From assembly GCA_965644265.1 (NCBI GenBank), contig OZ286465.1:100254001-100318000 (forward strand): a stretch of 64,000 bases of DNA. The letters run 5' to 3'. Under the pieces are notes generated by a model, which made no database searches, was not told the DNA's origin, and saw nothing but the letters and a program-made list of their open reading frames with translations. Below are positions 4,616-58,403 of the stretch, in pieces. This DNA comes from Glycera tridactyla (taxonomy: Eukaryota). Position 1 is the first letter of the stretch, and every line of letters starts with the position of its first letter. The position numbers were made by a program, and so were the translations under genes.

Positions 4616-6481
4616 TATTTGTGTGTGAGTGTGTGTGTATGTGTGTGCATGCGTGTATGTCCATGTGGAGGGGGGTCCAATTTCAGTGTCAGCATCATAG
4701 CTGGCCAATAATCATCTCTGTAGGGGCCCACCCAGAGGTTCAACCCCTATAAAAACCTATTGCACATGCATCATGTCATGGAAATATATATTTGATGGAA
4801 ATGGGTGTGTAGGTGTGTGCATGTGTTTGTGATTTTATAATCTCAGTAACATGAGCAGTGAAGGTTGATCAATCAATAATTCAATCAATCAAGTTTGAAA
4901 ATTGACAAAATTATCCCATTTCAAAAGGAATAATCAAATATATAGAACTCATCTTTTCCATCTTTAGACCAGAGAGAGATTGACTCACCTGTAAGAAAAA
5001 AAGACAAAATCAATTAGATATAGATCAAATTTGGCGGGAACTGATGATACCCTTAGGTATCTGCAAGCACATGCCGAAAGTATGCATATTTTTTTAACAA
5101 ATTCTAACACAGTTCTTCTAGGCATGTTTGTTAATGCTATGATGAAGAAAACAATCCCATCATCAGAAATTCATGTATAGTGGAATCTGTCATGAATGAT
5201 CCCCCAATGTGCAACTCCCATTCAAGTTGAGTGACCTCAATCATTATAACACTCACCTCATATATATTTTGCATAAATTACATTGTTATGAATATTTCAG
5301 AAAAGAATGTTACTCCAGGTCAAAAAATGGATTCCTGTCATCTTCCGGTCAATAGGTCCATTCAATCCATAGTGGAAAATATATCACGTTTGATTGACGG
5401 CTGCCAACATGCCAACATATATAACATATATACTAGCTATATAAATCAATCTTATTATGATTGGCCTGTAATTATATTCGAGGCCATTTCGATTGCTTCG
5501 TGCTGAATTGATTCAAATGCCAGGGATGCAATATTCGTCGATCAGCACTCAACAATAGCAGCCATCATGCACCTTGAATGTTACCAGTATCACTGATGTT
5601 ATGGTTTCTATAGGATGACGTAGGTAGAACCAATTGTTACGACTCAACATTCATTGGAGCACATCTGCTATGTTAGTCACAGCTCCTTTACCATCAAACG
5701 TGTCTTCCTGCAGGCAGTGTTCTAAAGAAAAAATATTCCACTACAAATCACATTCTATTTGAGGGAAATCAGGAGTTATATGATATCTTGGAAGTACCAC
5801 TGGGTATAGTCTTACACCTACTAAGCAAATTGAACGTATCAGATGGGAAAGGGCTGAGAATGTTTCACCATTGTGTACCAACTGTTGTGTTGTCATATGT
5901 ATGTTTTGTTAATCTGTTCGATCTCATGCTAGAAAAACAGTCACTCGACTTTCCTATGCAAGCCGAAACAGAGTCTTCAAATCCTAATTCAAAATTCAAA
6001 TGCTTACACAAATGTGATAGCTACTACCCAGTGTGATTCTTGAAGAGAGTTCCTGATACAGAAGAAGTGATGGATGATCACCCAGGTAATTTTATACGGG
6101 TTGTTAAACATCAACCAAAATAAAACATATCTGTGAATTTAAGCGAAAAGCCATCTCGTATCAGGAGCATAATTGACTTGATCAGATGGAAAAGCTACCC
6201 TGAAAAAGTGGTCTCCTATCAGGGCTGGTCTCTCATTGGGGGTCTCTCATTGCAGCTTCTGCTGTATCATAATGTAAGTTTTTGCGCCAAAAGATTGATC
6301 TCAAAAAGTTGGTCGATGCTCGGGAAATTCACAGGTCTCAATCTCTCTCAAGGCACCAGTATAAAGTGAGCTGATGATAAATATCGGCAAACAGATGTTC
6401 TTCTACTCGACTTCAATCTTTGATGGTGGTGTTCCAGGAAACTAACTTACTTTCACCATGAATGTGATGAGGTCCACTCAC

Positions 6482-6618
6482 CTGCCTTCAGGCTGTCAAA
6501 CATGGCCACGTTTCTTTCTCTTCACCTCTATTCCATACCTCTTAGCTCTTTCTTATCTCTACTGCAAAGTGGTCTCAGGTGAAGATAGCTAAAGGTTTGC
6601 CTGTAGTAGATATTGTCA
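6482..6618 (-). CDS. Candidate exon with start codon (MFDSLKA..., ATG at 6503-6501)
   Basis: Acceptor CCCATTTTTTACAG, context GTGGCCATG, donor GCAG|GTGAGT. All three frames are closed upstream of the ATG. Confidence 0.45.
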
Positions 6619-36750: not shown

Positions 36751-37559
36751 CAAACTATTTTTGATCATTGATTGCAATGCTTTCTCGCTATGCGCATTAA
36801 ACCTACAGAAGATTTTCGCTTGACTACCTTTCTTGCAGCGACACAGAAATTTCTAGAACCGTGGACTATTTCTATCCACAAGTAAATTGGTATTGATATA
36901 TGATAACATGTTGAAAAATGAGACTCATCCCATCTCAATGGTCACAGAAATGTGCTTGCAATTAAAAAGAAAACCAATTAAAAGATTATTAAATGGCTGA
37001 TATCATCATATTCTTCATTGATGCACTTTCCATACTGATGAGCGTTGCTCTTTTTCAGCGGCAGGCACGGAGATAAAGAATCAAGGACACATCTTTCTTC
37101 ATCAATTCATCGGTAATTATTTTTGAAGAATTTGCTTGCAAATCCTCTTATGGCACCATCGTCAAATCTGCTCTCTGCAATATGTCGGATCACATGGCAG
37201 GATAACTGAATGAAAGGAGACTCATTCAACTCAATCCCCATGCATTCTTAATGGGTGATTCAACAGAAGAATCATGTGTGGGTGATATGTGGAAATAGTG
37301 CTTTGTCAGAGTATGAAAACAGAACCTACTAGTGTTATCCCCTGCCTCCGGGTGGACCGGCACAGCCCACTTGTTCAGGAGGTGGAGCTATCCAAATGCT
37401 TCATCCTTTTTTATCCTCATCACAAAATACCAAACTCACCTGAAACATAAAATAGAATGATGTGAAAATATTCTATAGAAAAAAGAGCAGCAGTGTTTGT
37501 CTGGATGACAAAGGAAAGCAGACATTTGAGGAGCCCTATTCAAACCCCATGAACATCTC

Positions 37560-38135
37560 ACACACTACAGTACTTGGCAGGGAATATGGAAGAATGAAAT
37601 TTATGAAGGACCAATTCAATCATGTCTGGAGTATGCAGCATCAGTGTGCAGCCCGATGAGAATCAAGAATCAAGGAGATAGAAACTGTCAAGGGTGTGCA
37701 GCGTAGGGCAACAAAATTAGTCCCTGGATTGTCTGACCACAGCTATGAGGATAGACTGAGAGCAGTAGAATTACCCACTGTGGTCTTCAGGAGGCTACGT
37801 GGGGATATGATTGAGACTTTCAAGTTCCTGCATGACATATATGACATGTATCACAATGATATGTTACCCCCAGGTGGGGGGGGGCAGAGGAACAAGAGGG
37901 CACCCCTTGAAGAGGGCGAACAAGAGACTGAGAGCACATTTCTTCTCGCAGAGAATAGTGAACCAGTTGGACATGCTCCTAGAGGATTTTGTCACAGTGC
38001 GTCGAATAGTGAACCAGTTGGACATGCTCCTAGAGGATTTTGTCACAGTGCGTCCCGGCACTTAACAATATGCTAGACTCGATATCGGATGATGATGAAA
38101 ATCCTACGGCTACTTATCCTACAAGACAGAGATAT
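37560..38135 (+). mobile_element. CR1 LINE 3' fragment (RT C-terminus, degraded)
   Basis: EYAASVCSP, VQRRATKLVPGL, YEDRLRAVELPT, RRLRGDMIETFK, TRGHPLK, FFSQRIVN. Confidence 0.9.
37953..38054 (+). repeat. Perfect 51-bp tandem duplication inside the CR1 fragment
   Basis: GAATAGTGAACC...CAGTGCGTC occurs twice (37953-38003 and 38004-38054). Confidence 0.95.
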
Positions 38136-53860: not shown

Positions 53861-55949
53861 TCACACTGTCATTGAAGAGATTCCAGAGAAAGACATGTGT
53901 TTCACAATGGTGAATGCATGGTGGCACATGGGTGGTGGGGTGTTCGTGTACCTATGCTCCTACATTATGCTGCTAACAATTTGTGATGCACCTCACAATT
54001 ACTGACCTGTCAAAGATGTTTAACTCATGTGGTGGATCATGATGGTGGCTTCCCGTGGAGCACTTTAGGAGTAGCGATATCCTAAGGCATCAAGGAGGGT
54101 ATCTGCAAACTTTCTTGCAAGACTTCTGATCCAGTGACAGCGACCTCCGGGGCGAATGTGTCGAAAGTAATCTTCACATTGCAAGTAGCCCAGATATAGG
54201 TGCTGACACCGATCTCTCCTAAGATACCAATGATATCACCAACCACCAATCATGTGTCCGGATTTTATTTACGGTAAACAATTACGTTAGATACGGGCGA
54301 AGGTGTCTTGTGCTCTTTTTAGCAGAGTCTATTTTATCGAGACGGTGACGCTATTTGCAGGAGGGTAGCGAAATTACAATAGACGCAGTGAAGGACTCCC
54401 CTATCGATTTACAAAATGGACTCTTCCACTTTTCTCTCGAGCAGCGGTGGTTCTCCACATGCACGAGATCTCGACGTGCACGAGAACTGCAAGACTCGCT
54501 ACACACCTGTTGCGAGACAAAAGCACCTGTTTGCCTTTGAAGATCTGTTAGATCTTCCTTTGATCTTTAGCCTGCTATAACATTGAAAGTTTTAGGCGCA
54601 GTCCAGTCATACTTTCCGACAGAACGTAGTTTATGTTCACTACATATTCTTTGGGTTCTTTAAAAAAGCGCACCCTAGGCTGAATACACTGCCAACCTAG
54701 TAGCCCTCCAGGGGACGCTACTAGGTCCTCTCTGCTTCCCAGTTGCTACTTTTAATAGCCCCTGATCACAGAGAGCACAGCTCGCACGAAGCTTACTGTG
54801 GCCTGACTGTACATTGAGCCATCTTGAGCATCAGAGTCTTCAAGATGACCGGCTGGTGACCCAGTCGATAGCGATCAGGACATCTCAGTCACCCAAGAGC
54901 CTAACCGACGGTCTGATCCATTGTGGGTTCATACCACCCTATAGATACTGAGCAATGAACTTTGACCGTTTTCACCAGCCTTGCCTGTTCACATACATCT
55001 TACCAACAATTGGACTCATTGAGTTCAAACAATGTATGCTAGGTGTGGACTGTCATCCACGTACCACATGCGACCACTTATCAACATAGCAGGCAGCTCT
55101 ATAAAGCTATATAACGATAAGCTACGAGAAACGTTTTAGTACTACAGTATAGTGCAGTACCAAACACGTAAAAACTCGTTAGCAATATCAGAGCTAATAC
55201 CAGAGAGAGGTGCTAACTAGCAGAACCAAAAACTGATAGCCCTGTGTGAAAGGTGTCTTACCCCACACAGCAGCCTGGAATATTTACCCACTGTCAGTCA
55301 CAAACTACTCTCTGGCAGAGCAACCCACTTTATTGACAGCCCGATCAACATGCCGACTAGACGGTACCACAGTACTGTGTCAATTCACAGTTCGTTAGAC
55401 ACGTGGGCCATTCAGTATCTCCCATGCACTATAGCAGTATAACAGGAGTTTTACGTGCCCCCGGACCCTCGCGGGTCCACTGCCGCCTGTTTATGGAAAC
55501 CTTATAAGGAGCCTATCCCTCTTGAGTTTCCATATAATACTGCAATTCTCTCCGAAAATCTGGAATCCTAAAATACACATTATTTAAATCACCCAAATCG
55601 GAGTTAATTACACAGGCAGAGAATTTAGCTCCCTCTTTTCTGACAAGATCGAATCAGAGCTGCAGTCAGAGCAGGAGTTGTATCTACCTCTCTGTTCAGT
55701 CATATGATCGAGATTATCACTGGAAAGAACATGACGGGCTATATTGAGCCGTCATTGGGAAATTTACTGCCGAAACAACGATTTGTTAGATTTAATTTCC
55801 TCTTCCCATGTAATCCTAGAACTAGGCCTATAGCCATAAAAGGACAGTATTAGACACTCGATTGTGGGACGAGAAGTCACTGTTCCAGGGCTAGACCATA
55901 ATAATTCCATATTACATATCAGATAACATCACGACTTTTTCGTGGTGTT

Positions 55950-58403
55950 ACAGTCATAACGTGGAGAAATGGTCAAATGGAAAGCTTCTGTGATGAGCGA
56001 GACCAACTTAAAAGGACATTTGACAGTAACAAGGGTGAAGCTAACTGGGAGAGGTACAGAAGAGCCAGGAACACAACAACAACTTTGAAACGAAATTTGA
56101 AACGGACTTACTTCACTACTGCCCTGTTACGATACAAGCACGACTATAGAAAATTGTGGGCGACCCTCAGACGACTGTTACCAAATTCACGACTATTGAC
56201 GGAAATGAACAAACTGGGGGATGAGACTGAACCCGAGAAAATTGCTACAGCAGTAAATAACTATTTTTCTGACATCGGGGAAAACTTGGCCTGCAAATTT
56301 CGGAGTGGTATTCAATCAGATATGCCATCAAAAATTCCGGAGGGAGTACTGGGTTTCGATATACAGGAAGTGAATAGCCTTTTTGTAGAAAAGGAACTTA
56401 TGAGTATCGCTGACTCGAAGGCCACTGGTATAGATGGAATTCCTGCACGATTGCTAAAGGGTGCTGCTGAGGTTGTACTTGGCCCTCTGACTCATATTAT
56501 CAACCTGACGATCAGAAATAACCAGATACCAGGGGAGTTCAAGAAGGCAATTGTGTGTCCTATCTACAAAGGGGGGAGCCGCACCGAAATAGGCAACTAT
56601 AGGCCTGTGAGTCTTTTGCCTGTGCTTAGCAAGGTCATGGAAAGAGCTGTCCATAGTCAGCTTTATGATTTTCTTAGGTCTCATGATTTGCTGAGTGGAA
56701 TGCAATCTGGGTTCAGGAAGGGCCACTCCACTAGCACGTGCCTGTTAACTATCTTAGAGGATATTTGGACAGGCATGGATCAGGGACGTGCTACTGGGGC
56801 GGTCTTCCTGGACCTAAAAAAAGCATTCGACACAGTGAATCATGAGACCATACTCTATAAATTATCCAAGTATGGCCTAAAGCCTGATGCCATTGGTTGG
56901 TTTAGGAATTATTTGTCAGGCCGCACTCAAGTGACACGCGTAAGGGGTGAATTTTCTGGGGAACGCAATATTACCTGTGGAGTGCCCCAGGGATCTATCT
57001 TGGGGCCGCTCATGTTCGTTATCTATAATAATGATCTGCCAGACTACATTAAAAGCTGCCAGATAAGAATGTATGCGGACGATACCATCCTGTATACAAC
57101 GTCCAGTGATCCAGACACATTAGAATTGACTCTGCAGTTGGCTATTATTGAAGCTGAGTCGTGGCTACATAACAATAAACTGACTTTAAATGCGTCCAAA
57201 ACTAAATGGATGGTTTTTGGTACTACCCCCAACCTGGTCAAATACCATCATATAACTATGGTCATGGACGGCACAATTATAGAAAGGGTGGAGGAGTTCA
57301 AGTATCTGGGAGTCTACTTGGAGCCGCGACTCAGCTTCAACAAACATGTCGCTTATACTGCCGCGAATTGTACGCAGAAACTATCTATCATTGGGAAAGC
57401 CCGTAATTCAATTGACAAATCCACTGCATTTATGTTGTTCAATGCATTGATATTACCAATATTGGATTATGGGGACTTGGCTTATGGGTGTACGGGGGTG
57501 AATAATCAACTCAGACTTCAGCGGATACAAAATGCGGGCTGTCGCATTGTCCTACAAGCTGAACCTATGACACCCACCCGGGATATGCATCAGCAATTGC
57601 GACTACCCATGCTGTATGAGCGCCGTGATGACCACATGTCAGTCTGTGTATTTAGCTGCATACATGACATCTACCCACCACCACTTAATGGGCTCTTTGA
57701 GAGGAGGGAAGTCAGGGAAGGTCCATTTACAAGAAGTCAGACACAAGGCCTCTTGACGATACCTAGGTCAAATACCATGATGGGAGACAATAGGTTAAGT
57801 GTGAGGGGTGCTAGGGTTTATAATGGGGTACCGTCAATCGTTAAGGATACCAGAAGCCTACCAGCATTCAAAAAGAGAATTAAGGATAGCAGGCAGTCCT
57901 TTTTCATGTTTGCGAACAATTTGGCATGATCAACAGATAGTAGTAGCATTCAGTAACAATATACATGCTGAGTAGTCCTAATATTCTTAATATTCTTTAT
58001 ATCAATATCTCTAGCTCAGGTAATATAAAGGCAAATATCGGCAGTCATTCGACCGTCATCGATAGTGCATTATGTTGTGTTTATTATTGTATGCTGTAAT
58101 GTGATATAGGCGTTCGGTGAATGCAGCCCACTGTCAGCTGGCTAGTACATCATATGTTGATATGGTGTGTGGCGACCCAGGTATTACCCATGCAGTGAGG
58201 GGGGAGAAGTTTTCATAAAGAGCAGTATCAGTAATTGGGAACAGATGAGATTGTAATATGTCATGATTGAATATGTTTCATTTTGCAATTTATAAGTAGT
58301 TAAGTATAAGTGAGTACTCTGTATTTTGGGGTGTATTTTATGTTTTCTGTATACCTGGATGGTGTGGAAATGAGTTGTCTCAGCTCATATCCATTAATAA
58401 AGA
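55950..58403 (+). mobile_element. LINE of the CR1/L2 group with intact 3' UTR and terminal hairpin; 5' boundary uncertain
   Basis: The RT ORF is followed by about 470 nt of T-rich UTR ending GGAAATGAGTTG-TCT-CAGCTCAT (stem-loop) then AATAAA, which resembles L2-group 3' termini. Confidence 0.85.
55977..57929 (+). CDS. Non-LTR retrotransposon reverse transcriptase, CR1/L2 group (L2B/Crack/Daphne-like), 650 aa, uninterrupted
   Basis: RT motifs NYRPVSLLPVLSKVMER, QSGFRKGHST, VFLDLKKAFDTV, GVPQGSILGP, YADD and FKYLGV; CR1/L2-type C-terminus LILPILDYG...LQRIQN...FKKRIK. The ORF starts at the usual post-APE linker; in-frame stop at 55902-55904 and no APE motifs seen upstream. Confidence 0.95.
   Translation: MESFCDERDQLKRTFDSNKGEANWERYRRARNTTTTLKRNLKRTYFTTALLRYKHDYRKLWATLRRLLPNSRLLTEMNKLGDETEPEKIATAVNNYFSDIGENLACKFRSGIQSDMPSKIPEGVLGFDIQEVNSLFVEKELMSIADSKATGIDGIPARLLKGAAEVVLGPLTHIINLTIRNNQIPGEFKKAIVCPIYKGGSRTEIGNYRPVSLLPVLSKVMERAVHSQLYDFLRSHDLLSGMQSGFRKGHSTSTCLLTILEDIWTGMDQGRATGAVFLDLKKAFDTVNHETILYKLSKYGLKPDAIGWFRNYLSGRTQVTRVRGEFSGERNITCGVPQGSILGPLMFVIYNNDLPDYIKSCQIRMYADDTILYTTSSDPDTLELTLQLAIIEAESWLHNNKLTLNASKTKWMVFGTTPNLVKYHHITMVMDGTIIERVEEFKYLGVYLEPRLSFNKHVAYTAANCTQKLSIIGKARNSIDKSTAFMLFNALILPILDYGDLAYGCTGVNNQLRLQRIQNAGCRIVLQAEPMTPTRDMHQQLRLPMLYERRDDHMSVCVFSCIHDIYPPPLNGLFERREVREGPFTRSQTQGLLTIPRSNTMMGDNRLSVRGARVYNGVPSIVKDTRSLPAFKKRIKDSRQSFFMFANNLA

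Follow-up and report, generated by a model that had tools for sequence, protein, structure and literature searches.

The stretch of DNA analysed here, hereafter the window, is 64,000 nucleotides long and corresponds to C17:100254001-100318000; 200 kb of upstream flank were added to it (L013-L032, window-scale 64001-264000), and bare positions below are on the scale of the window. Read directly, the minus strand from 37472 to 37434 is AATATTTTCACATCATTCTATTTTATGTTTCAG/GTGAGT (the slash marks the junction), with the AG at 37441-37440, the GT at 37439-37438 and TATGTTTCAG/GTGAGT at the junction itself. Consensus 3' and 5' splice sites are juxtaposed here around AG/GT, and they are accompanied by a polypyrimidine tract and a plausible branch point. 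The features on which the argument draws are the following:

37435 to 37449, minus strand: core 15-mer TATGTTTCAG/GTGAG; 37440, the last base of the AG, is followed across the junction by 37439, the first base of the GT
37440 to 37472, minus strand: acceptor half, a pyrimidine-rich tract; the closest preceding AG is at -34
37463, minus strand: branch-point-like TTCAC with its A at -24, as suggested by the yUnAy consensus
37434 to 37439, minus strand: donor half GTGAGT, immediately 3' of the AG, read from the sequence
37329 to 37439, minus strand: possible cryptic recursive-splicing exon, suggested by weak donors
37340 to 37401, no strand assigned: short multicopy unit of about 60 nt, which begins 39 nt downstream of the junction and bounds a repeat-free island on one side
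37599 to 37997, plus strand: 5'-truncated LINE tail that carries a C-terminal ORF and runs antisense to the proposed gene; it bounds the island on the other side
4983 to 4995, minus strand: second candidate site, TCTTACAG/GTGAGT, junction 4989/4988, from sequence reading
137413 to 137700 (L020:3413-3700), minus strand: I-set immunoglobulin exon of 288 nt, phase 1-1 (Pfam E = 3.5e-14)

A sequence-only reading of this DNA had described a strong acceptor directly followed by a GTGAGT donor on the minus strand; the sequence is as described and its 37439/37440 is the identical junction. Its remark that all three frames reach a stop within 39 nt is likewise borne out: the stops after the junction end at nt 39, 4 and 20, and the frame continued from the phase-1 immunoglobulin exon past 37439, checked by script, closes after 6 codons. 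A donor scan downstream of 37439 found no strong donor that would close a cryptic exon. The donors that do occur there, caa/GTGGGC at +70 (37370) and cta/GTAGGT at +111 (37329), are weak (6/9 matches each) and are located in or past the multicopy unit.

The junction is held in a repeat-free island of about 200 nt (37402-37598) that is without match elsewhere in the genome. None of the repeat matches spans the junction; the nearest begin 39 nt from it on the downstream side and 160 nt from it on the upstream side, so the concern that the motif might simply lie inside a multicopy repeat finds no footing at the sensitivity tested. In the genome search, the multicopy unit accounted for 48 matches, all to query positions 160-221; it has many copies of 82-93% identity and forms tandem arrays elsewhere, including one at C11:71.2077-71.2086 Mb with a period of about 83 nt. 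On the other side of the island, the ORF of the LINE tail gave no match in Pfam, and we take it to be CR1-like from inspection of the ORF alone. When ten ORFs of the window were searched against Pfam, reverse transcriptase was the sole match; an Rfam scan of the window returned no match. Two long intact reverse-transcriptase ORFs, one at 55905-57926 on the plus strand (674 aa, with a Pfam RVT_1 match) and one at L016:226-2496 on the minus strand (window-scale 94226-96496, 757 aa), represent young LINE copies within the proposed intron, the former in antisense and the latter in sense orientation to it.

The proposed host gene and its probable intron

A coding-potential scan of the 264 kb singled out one minus-strand ORF, the immunoglobulin exon, which lies 100 kb upstream of 37440 on the same strand. 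Its I-set domain is complete and its splice sites are canonical (acceptor ctgtttccag/GTGAAG, donor GAAG/GTAAGT). The exon opens with GTGAAG directly after ctgtttccag, an arrangement that resembles the 15-mer motif, and on its sequence it looks like an expressed recursive-splicing exon. The closest protein to it is P0142, whose sixth immunoglobulin domain shows 43-45% identity over the exon and which, from inspection of its sequence, we take to be L1/contactin-like. A large protein search with the exon returned generic multi-immunoglobulin proteins only, with at most 37% identity in that table, and its Atlas match is a generic I-set domain. Neither an annotated product nor a close homologue of the host gene was found in the protein collections searched, or by word search. 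When P0142 was compared with the genome, the exon was recovered without neighbouring exons, and better matches were obtained at C17:41.38 Mb; tblastn with 150 immunoglobulin-family proteins, at E < 0.1, detected no further exon in the 264 kb.

The host looks like a minus-strand cell-adhesion-type immunoglobulin gene, seen through a single exon. Because this exon must splice onward, everything below it for 137 kb, the whole window included, is most simply one giant minus-strand intron, and 37440 is probably a sense-strand position within this intron, whose length would be 137 kb or more. The plus strand carries an excess of A over T from 8 to 144 kb, with a CpG observed/expected ratio of 0.3-0.5, and both the base skew and the CpG depletion are in keeping with a methylated gene body on the minus strand; in the 264 kb, neither donor-like words nor poly(A) signals showed a clear strand bias. 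Two premises of the sequence-only reading, a gene on the minus strand and a long intron, thus gain indirect support, the former from an intact I-set exon with canonical splice sites 100 kb upstream, the latter from 264 kb in which no further exon is detectable.

A chain of sites on the minus strand

When the 264 kb are searched for YAG/GTRAG preceded by a pyrimidine tract, six sites are found on the minus strand (228560, 228525, 182746, 93873, 37440 and 4989) and none on the plus strand. Three of them, 37440, 93873 (L015:9873) and 182746 (L024:8746), carry the exact 15-mer TATGTTTCAGGTGAG within 145 kb, while at its genome-wide rate about 0.007 occurrences would be expected in 264 kb of one strand. 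The upstream flanks are pyrimidine-rich at all three; their 300-nt flanks are no more similar than shuffled sequence in anchored and local alignments, and the three sites are therefore not copies of one element. Sites and exon together mark out segments of 45.8 kb (228560 to 182746), 45.0 kb (to the immunoglobulin exon), 43.5 kb (to 93873), 56.4 kb (to 37440) and 32.5 kb (to 4989).

Some local details of the other sites are worth recording. The 4989 site is followed at +37 by AAG/ATGAGT (4947-4955), a donor-like word with A replacing the first G, and the 37440 site by a mere weak GG/ATGAAG at +36. A shared downstream AT pseudo-donor was considered and set aside as unconvincing (GATG after the six sites 6 times vs 2.1 expected, P = 0.02, post hoc). 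The 13-mer TCTTACAGGTGAG of the 4989 site recurs at L029:4525 (window-scale 228525); here, at L029:4525-4560 on the minus strand (window-scale 228525-228560), two YAG/GTGAG sites stand 35 nt apart and delimit a 35-nt cassette that begins with GTGAGT and ends ahead of GTGAGC, with a SINE-like repeat about 30 nt further on. At 6483-6562, also on the minus strand, an acceptor ctttgcag/ is followed by about 80 nt with stops, an ATG in good context (gtggccATGt) and a donor GGCAG/GTGAGT; this stretch may be an exon, non-coding or leader, or a product of chance.

The motif class genome-wide

How much of this could be expected by chance depends on how much of the motif is considered. For YAGGTRAGT, chance predicts 0.92 occurrences per strand in 64 kb, and adding a demand for at least 15 pyrimidines in the 20 positions upstream lowers the expectation to about 0.045 on the minus strand of the window. 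Scaled up, the same criteria give a few thousand chance sites genome-wide, so that the motif by itself is weak evidence. Longer words were counted over the 2.04-Gb assembly and compared with Markov models trained on the 264 kb of local sequence. Among 12-mers, TTTCAGGTGAGT occurs 1050 times vs 580-970 expected (reversed control, 253), TTTCAGGTAAGT 315 times vs about 340 expected, and TTACAGGTGAGT, the class of the 4989 site, 571 times vs 335-435 expected, the last being judged not enriched genome-wide (571 vs 524). The reversed pattern was dropped as a baseline for 12-mers, as unfair after the Markov check. With little or no excess at this level, most plain acceptor-donor pairs in the genome are due to chance.

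The 15-mer behaves differently: TATGTTTCAGGTGAG is over-represented 7- to 20-fold genome-wide (reversed control, 5), and its single-base variants at -3 and +3 are distributed as follows (observed, then Markov-expected):

C at -3 and G at +3 (reference 15-mer): 109 observed, about 15 (10-18) expected
T at -3: 66 observed, about 8 expected
A at -3: 4 observed, about 5 expected
G at -3: about 7 independent loci plus one six-copy tandem array observed, about 14 expected
A at +3: 19 observed, about 5.5 expected
C at +3: 11 observed, about 11 expected
T at +3: 8 observed, about 5 expected

Enrichment for Y at -3 and for R at +3 is the pattern of real YAG/GTR splice sites. The sites are also clustered: in a hand count among the 166 C and T variants listed, 15 neighbouring pairs lie less than 100 kb apart vs 1.35 expected, and the two members are on the same strand in every one of the 15 (for example C32:90.11-90.25, C10:37.48-37.56, C10:117.21-117.26 and C29:92.02-92.07 Mb). 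Over-representation, splice-like substitutions and strand-coherent pairs together give the motif the marks of selection within this genome. The class consensus appears to be about YNTGTTTYAG/GTRAG, with G preferred at +3, in same-strand chains spaced by tens of kb; TG is present at -8/-7 in 32 of 100 sampled TTTCAGGTGAG sites, and this preference, like that for G over A at +3, exceeds ordinary splice-site rules.

The wider TTTCAGGTGAG class is partly repeat-derived: copies prefixed by ACAC sit in a 130-nt tandem array, and CTGA and ATGA are frequent as prefixes. ACACTTTCAGGTGAG is found in a 130-nt array at C1:603327-604126, and TATGTTTGAGGTGAG occurs six times at C4:112461230-112470013 on the plus strand, about 1.6-1.9 kb apart, in a tandem repeat carrying the word.

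Proposed recursive splicing and its alternatives

We read 37440 as a candidate recursive-splicing ratchet point in the giant intron of a minus-strand cell-adhesion-type immunoglobulin-domain gene, with a probability of roughly one half. The proposal of the sequence-only reading, that this long intron may be spliced recursively, is thus supported in part: a non-repeat site, a probable minus-strand gene, a probable long intron and an over-represented, strand-coherent motif class speak for it; against it, an ordinary exon of 33 or 61 nt would also be compatible with the sequence. Under recursive splicing, the transcript would run from higher to lower coordinates, and the donor of the immunoglobulin exon (137413/137412), or that of an earlier ratchet point (93873), would be joined first to TATGTTTCAG/ at 37440, which would remove about 56 kb as a lariat. 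GTGAGT would now abut the exon and recreate a donor, to be joined in turn to the next acceptor, that of a real exon beyond the start of the window or possibly the 4989 site. As in flies, a short cryptic exon, closed by the weak donor at +70 or +111, may be needed for recognition; since GTGAGT is a stronger donor than either, this exon would be skipped every time and, if included, would lead to an immediate stop codon.

The same junction could instead be the edge of an ordinary or poison cassette exon, sometimes included, either one of 33 or 61 nt that ends at the CAG and uses GTGAGT as its donor, or a short one that starts with GTGAGT. Two further good acceptors precede the junction, catccag/ at -61 and tctatag/ at -33; of the three frames of the 61-nt version two are open, among them the one that continues from the immunoglobulin exon. 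Weak donors are present at +70 and +111, and the 15-mer class statistics would equally fit conserved exon edges. However, the three local sites have the 15-mer alone in common and nothing in the putative exon bodies, a 61-nt exon shifts the frame, and any exon starting with GTGAGT stops within 39 nt. We consider a cassette exon unlikely, bearing in mind that it overlaps with the recursive model, given that cryptic exons are part of the fly and vertebrate mechanism (PMC8605326). The strictness of the consensus (TG at -8/-7, G far above A at +3) goes beyond what splicing needs and the GTAAGT version is without 12-mer enrichment, which would fit a sequence-specific element that only resembles splice sites, for example either a DNA-protein site (the core contains the E-box CAGGTG) or the site of an RNA-binding factor, with an orientation preference in domains. 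This has a small probability in our view: T for C at -3 is equally enriched while A and G are not, a substitution that breaks the E-box and keeps the 3' splice site, and the three local sites have pyrimidine-rich upstream flanks. Moreover, neighbouring pairs keep to one strand over tens of kb in 15 of 15 cases and the local sites share their strand with the coding exon, which together point to a function read along the transcript.

A functionless chance motif, already graded as unlikely, would account for a plain polypyrimidine-YAG/GTRAGT, of which thousands are expected genome-wide, and for a 12-mer near its Markov expectation; it hardly accounts for a 15-mer found 7- to 20-fold above expectation or for the presence of three identical copies in 145 kb of a single strand, and we regard it as very improbable. 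Scarcely any weight is left for the remnant of an old or short-ended mobile element that shares the word, with the orientation bias typical inside genes. It is true that the wider TTTCAGGTGAG class consists in part of clear repeats, that a six-copy tandem array is among the loci with G at -3 and that transposon fragments come within 39 nt and 160 nt of the junction, but no match covers the junction itself and the flanks of the three sites align like shuffled sequence.

Intronic ratchet points, or recursive splice sites, were reportedly described in Drosophila by Burnette in 2005 and by Duff in 2015. Flies have several sites per intron, placed so as to divide introns (Pai 2018, PMC6110457), with GTGAG in 65 cases vs GTAAG in 92 (supplementary table of PMC6110457), and their ratchet-point motifs are ultraconserved while the cryptic exons are not (Joseph and Lai 2021, PMC8605326). 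The 37440 site is comparable in that a strong acceptor and a strong donor are juxtaposed around AG/GT, on what appears from sequence to be the sense strand of a very long intron, with several candidate sites per gene tens of kb apart, a fixed motif and free flanks, a frequent GTGAG, and any cryptic exon either out of frame or stopping at once. In contrast to Drosophila, the acceptor side of the candidate class seems stricter (YNTGTTTYAG), G is preferred at +3 rather than the A of flies, a cryptic exon has no clear donor downstream to define it, and the plain GTAAGT pair is without genome-wide excess. The scheme of a skipped cryptic exon proposed here is the fly and vertebrate model (PMC8605326, PMC5126111). 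Vertebrate recursive-splicing exons belong to long neuronal genes (Sibley 2015; cadm2a is mentioned in the review PMC5126111), and the likeness here extends to what looks like a cell-adhesion-type immunoglobulin host with giant introns, and to a premature stop that inclusion of a short exon would bring. Ratchet-point motifs are enriched in long introns of sea urchin (8.2-fold) and fruit fly (21.7-fold) (Shepard 2009, PMC2773006), and vertebrates are without a genome-wide excess of such motifs (PMC2773006); unlike in vertebrates, a subclass is over-represented here and occurs in chains. A mollusc is not among the species studied in PMC2773006. Our strand-specific acceptor-donor excess in a probable long intron is computational, as were those predictions in insects and sea urchin (PMC2773006), but the comparison of sense and antisense is here that of one locus (6 vs 0). 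A literature search for recursive splicing in molluscs found no paper, and the sequence-only reading's remark that it knew of no record of the process in the lineage holds as far as checked. To our knowledge, experimental proof of recursive splicing is limited to flies and vertebrates.

In molluscs with 2-Gb genomes, introns longer than 50 kb are numerous, and their accurate removal matters both for the annotation and for the understanding of long neuronal genes. The result reported here is a defined word, TATGTTTYAG/GTGAG, that is over-represented, shows splice-like substitutions and occurs in same-strand chains, and not one motif alone; the chains could let annotators predict transcription units and their strands. 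A broader, tentative and rather doubtful proposal is that a lineage-specific rigid ratchet signal of about YNTGTTTYAG/GTGAG cuts giant introns into pieces of about 30-60 kb. Its sites would number at least about 170 when those with a TATG prefix are counted alone, and their total might exceed a thousand. A dedicated factor, in addition to the general splicing machinery, might be required for its recognition and would account for TG at -8/-7 and G at +3. If this were true, a third animal lineage would have recursive splicing as a major, sequence-defined part of the way it removes introns; if the class is not used in splicing, it is an unexplained strand-specific genomic signal worth separate study. 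Elsewhere in the genome, on the minus strand of C10, TATGTTTCAG/GTGAG is followed 620 nt downstream by TTTCAG/GTAAGT on the same strand (C10:101369883 and C10:101370504), which could represent two stepping stones or else a unit of exon size.
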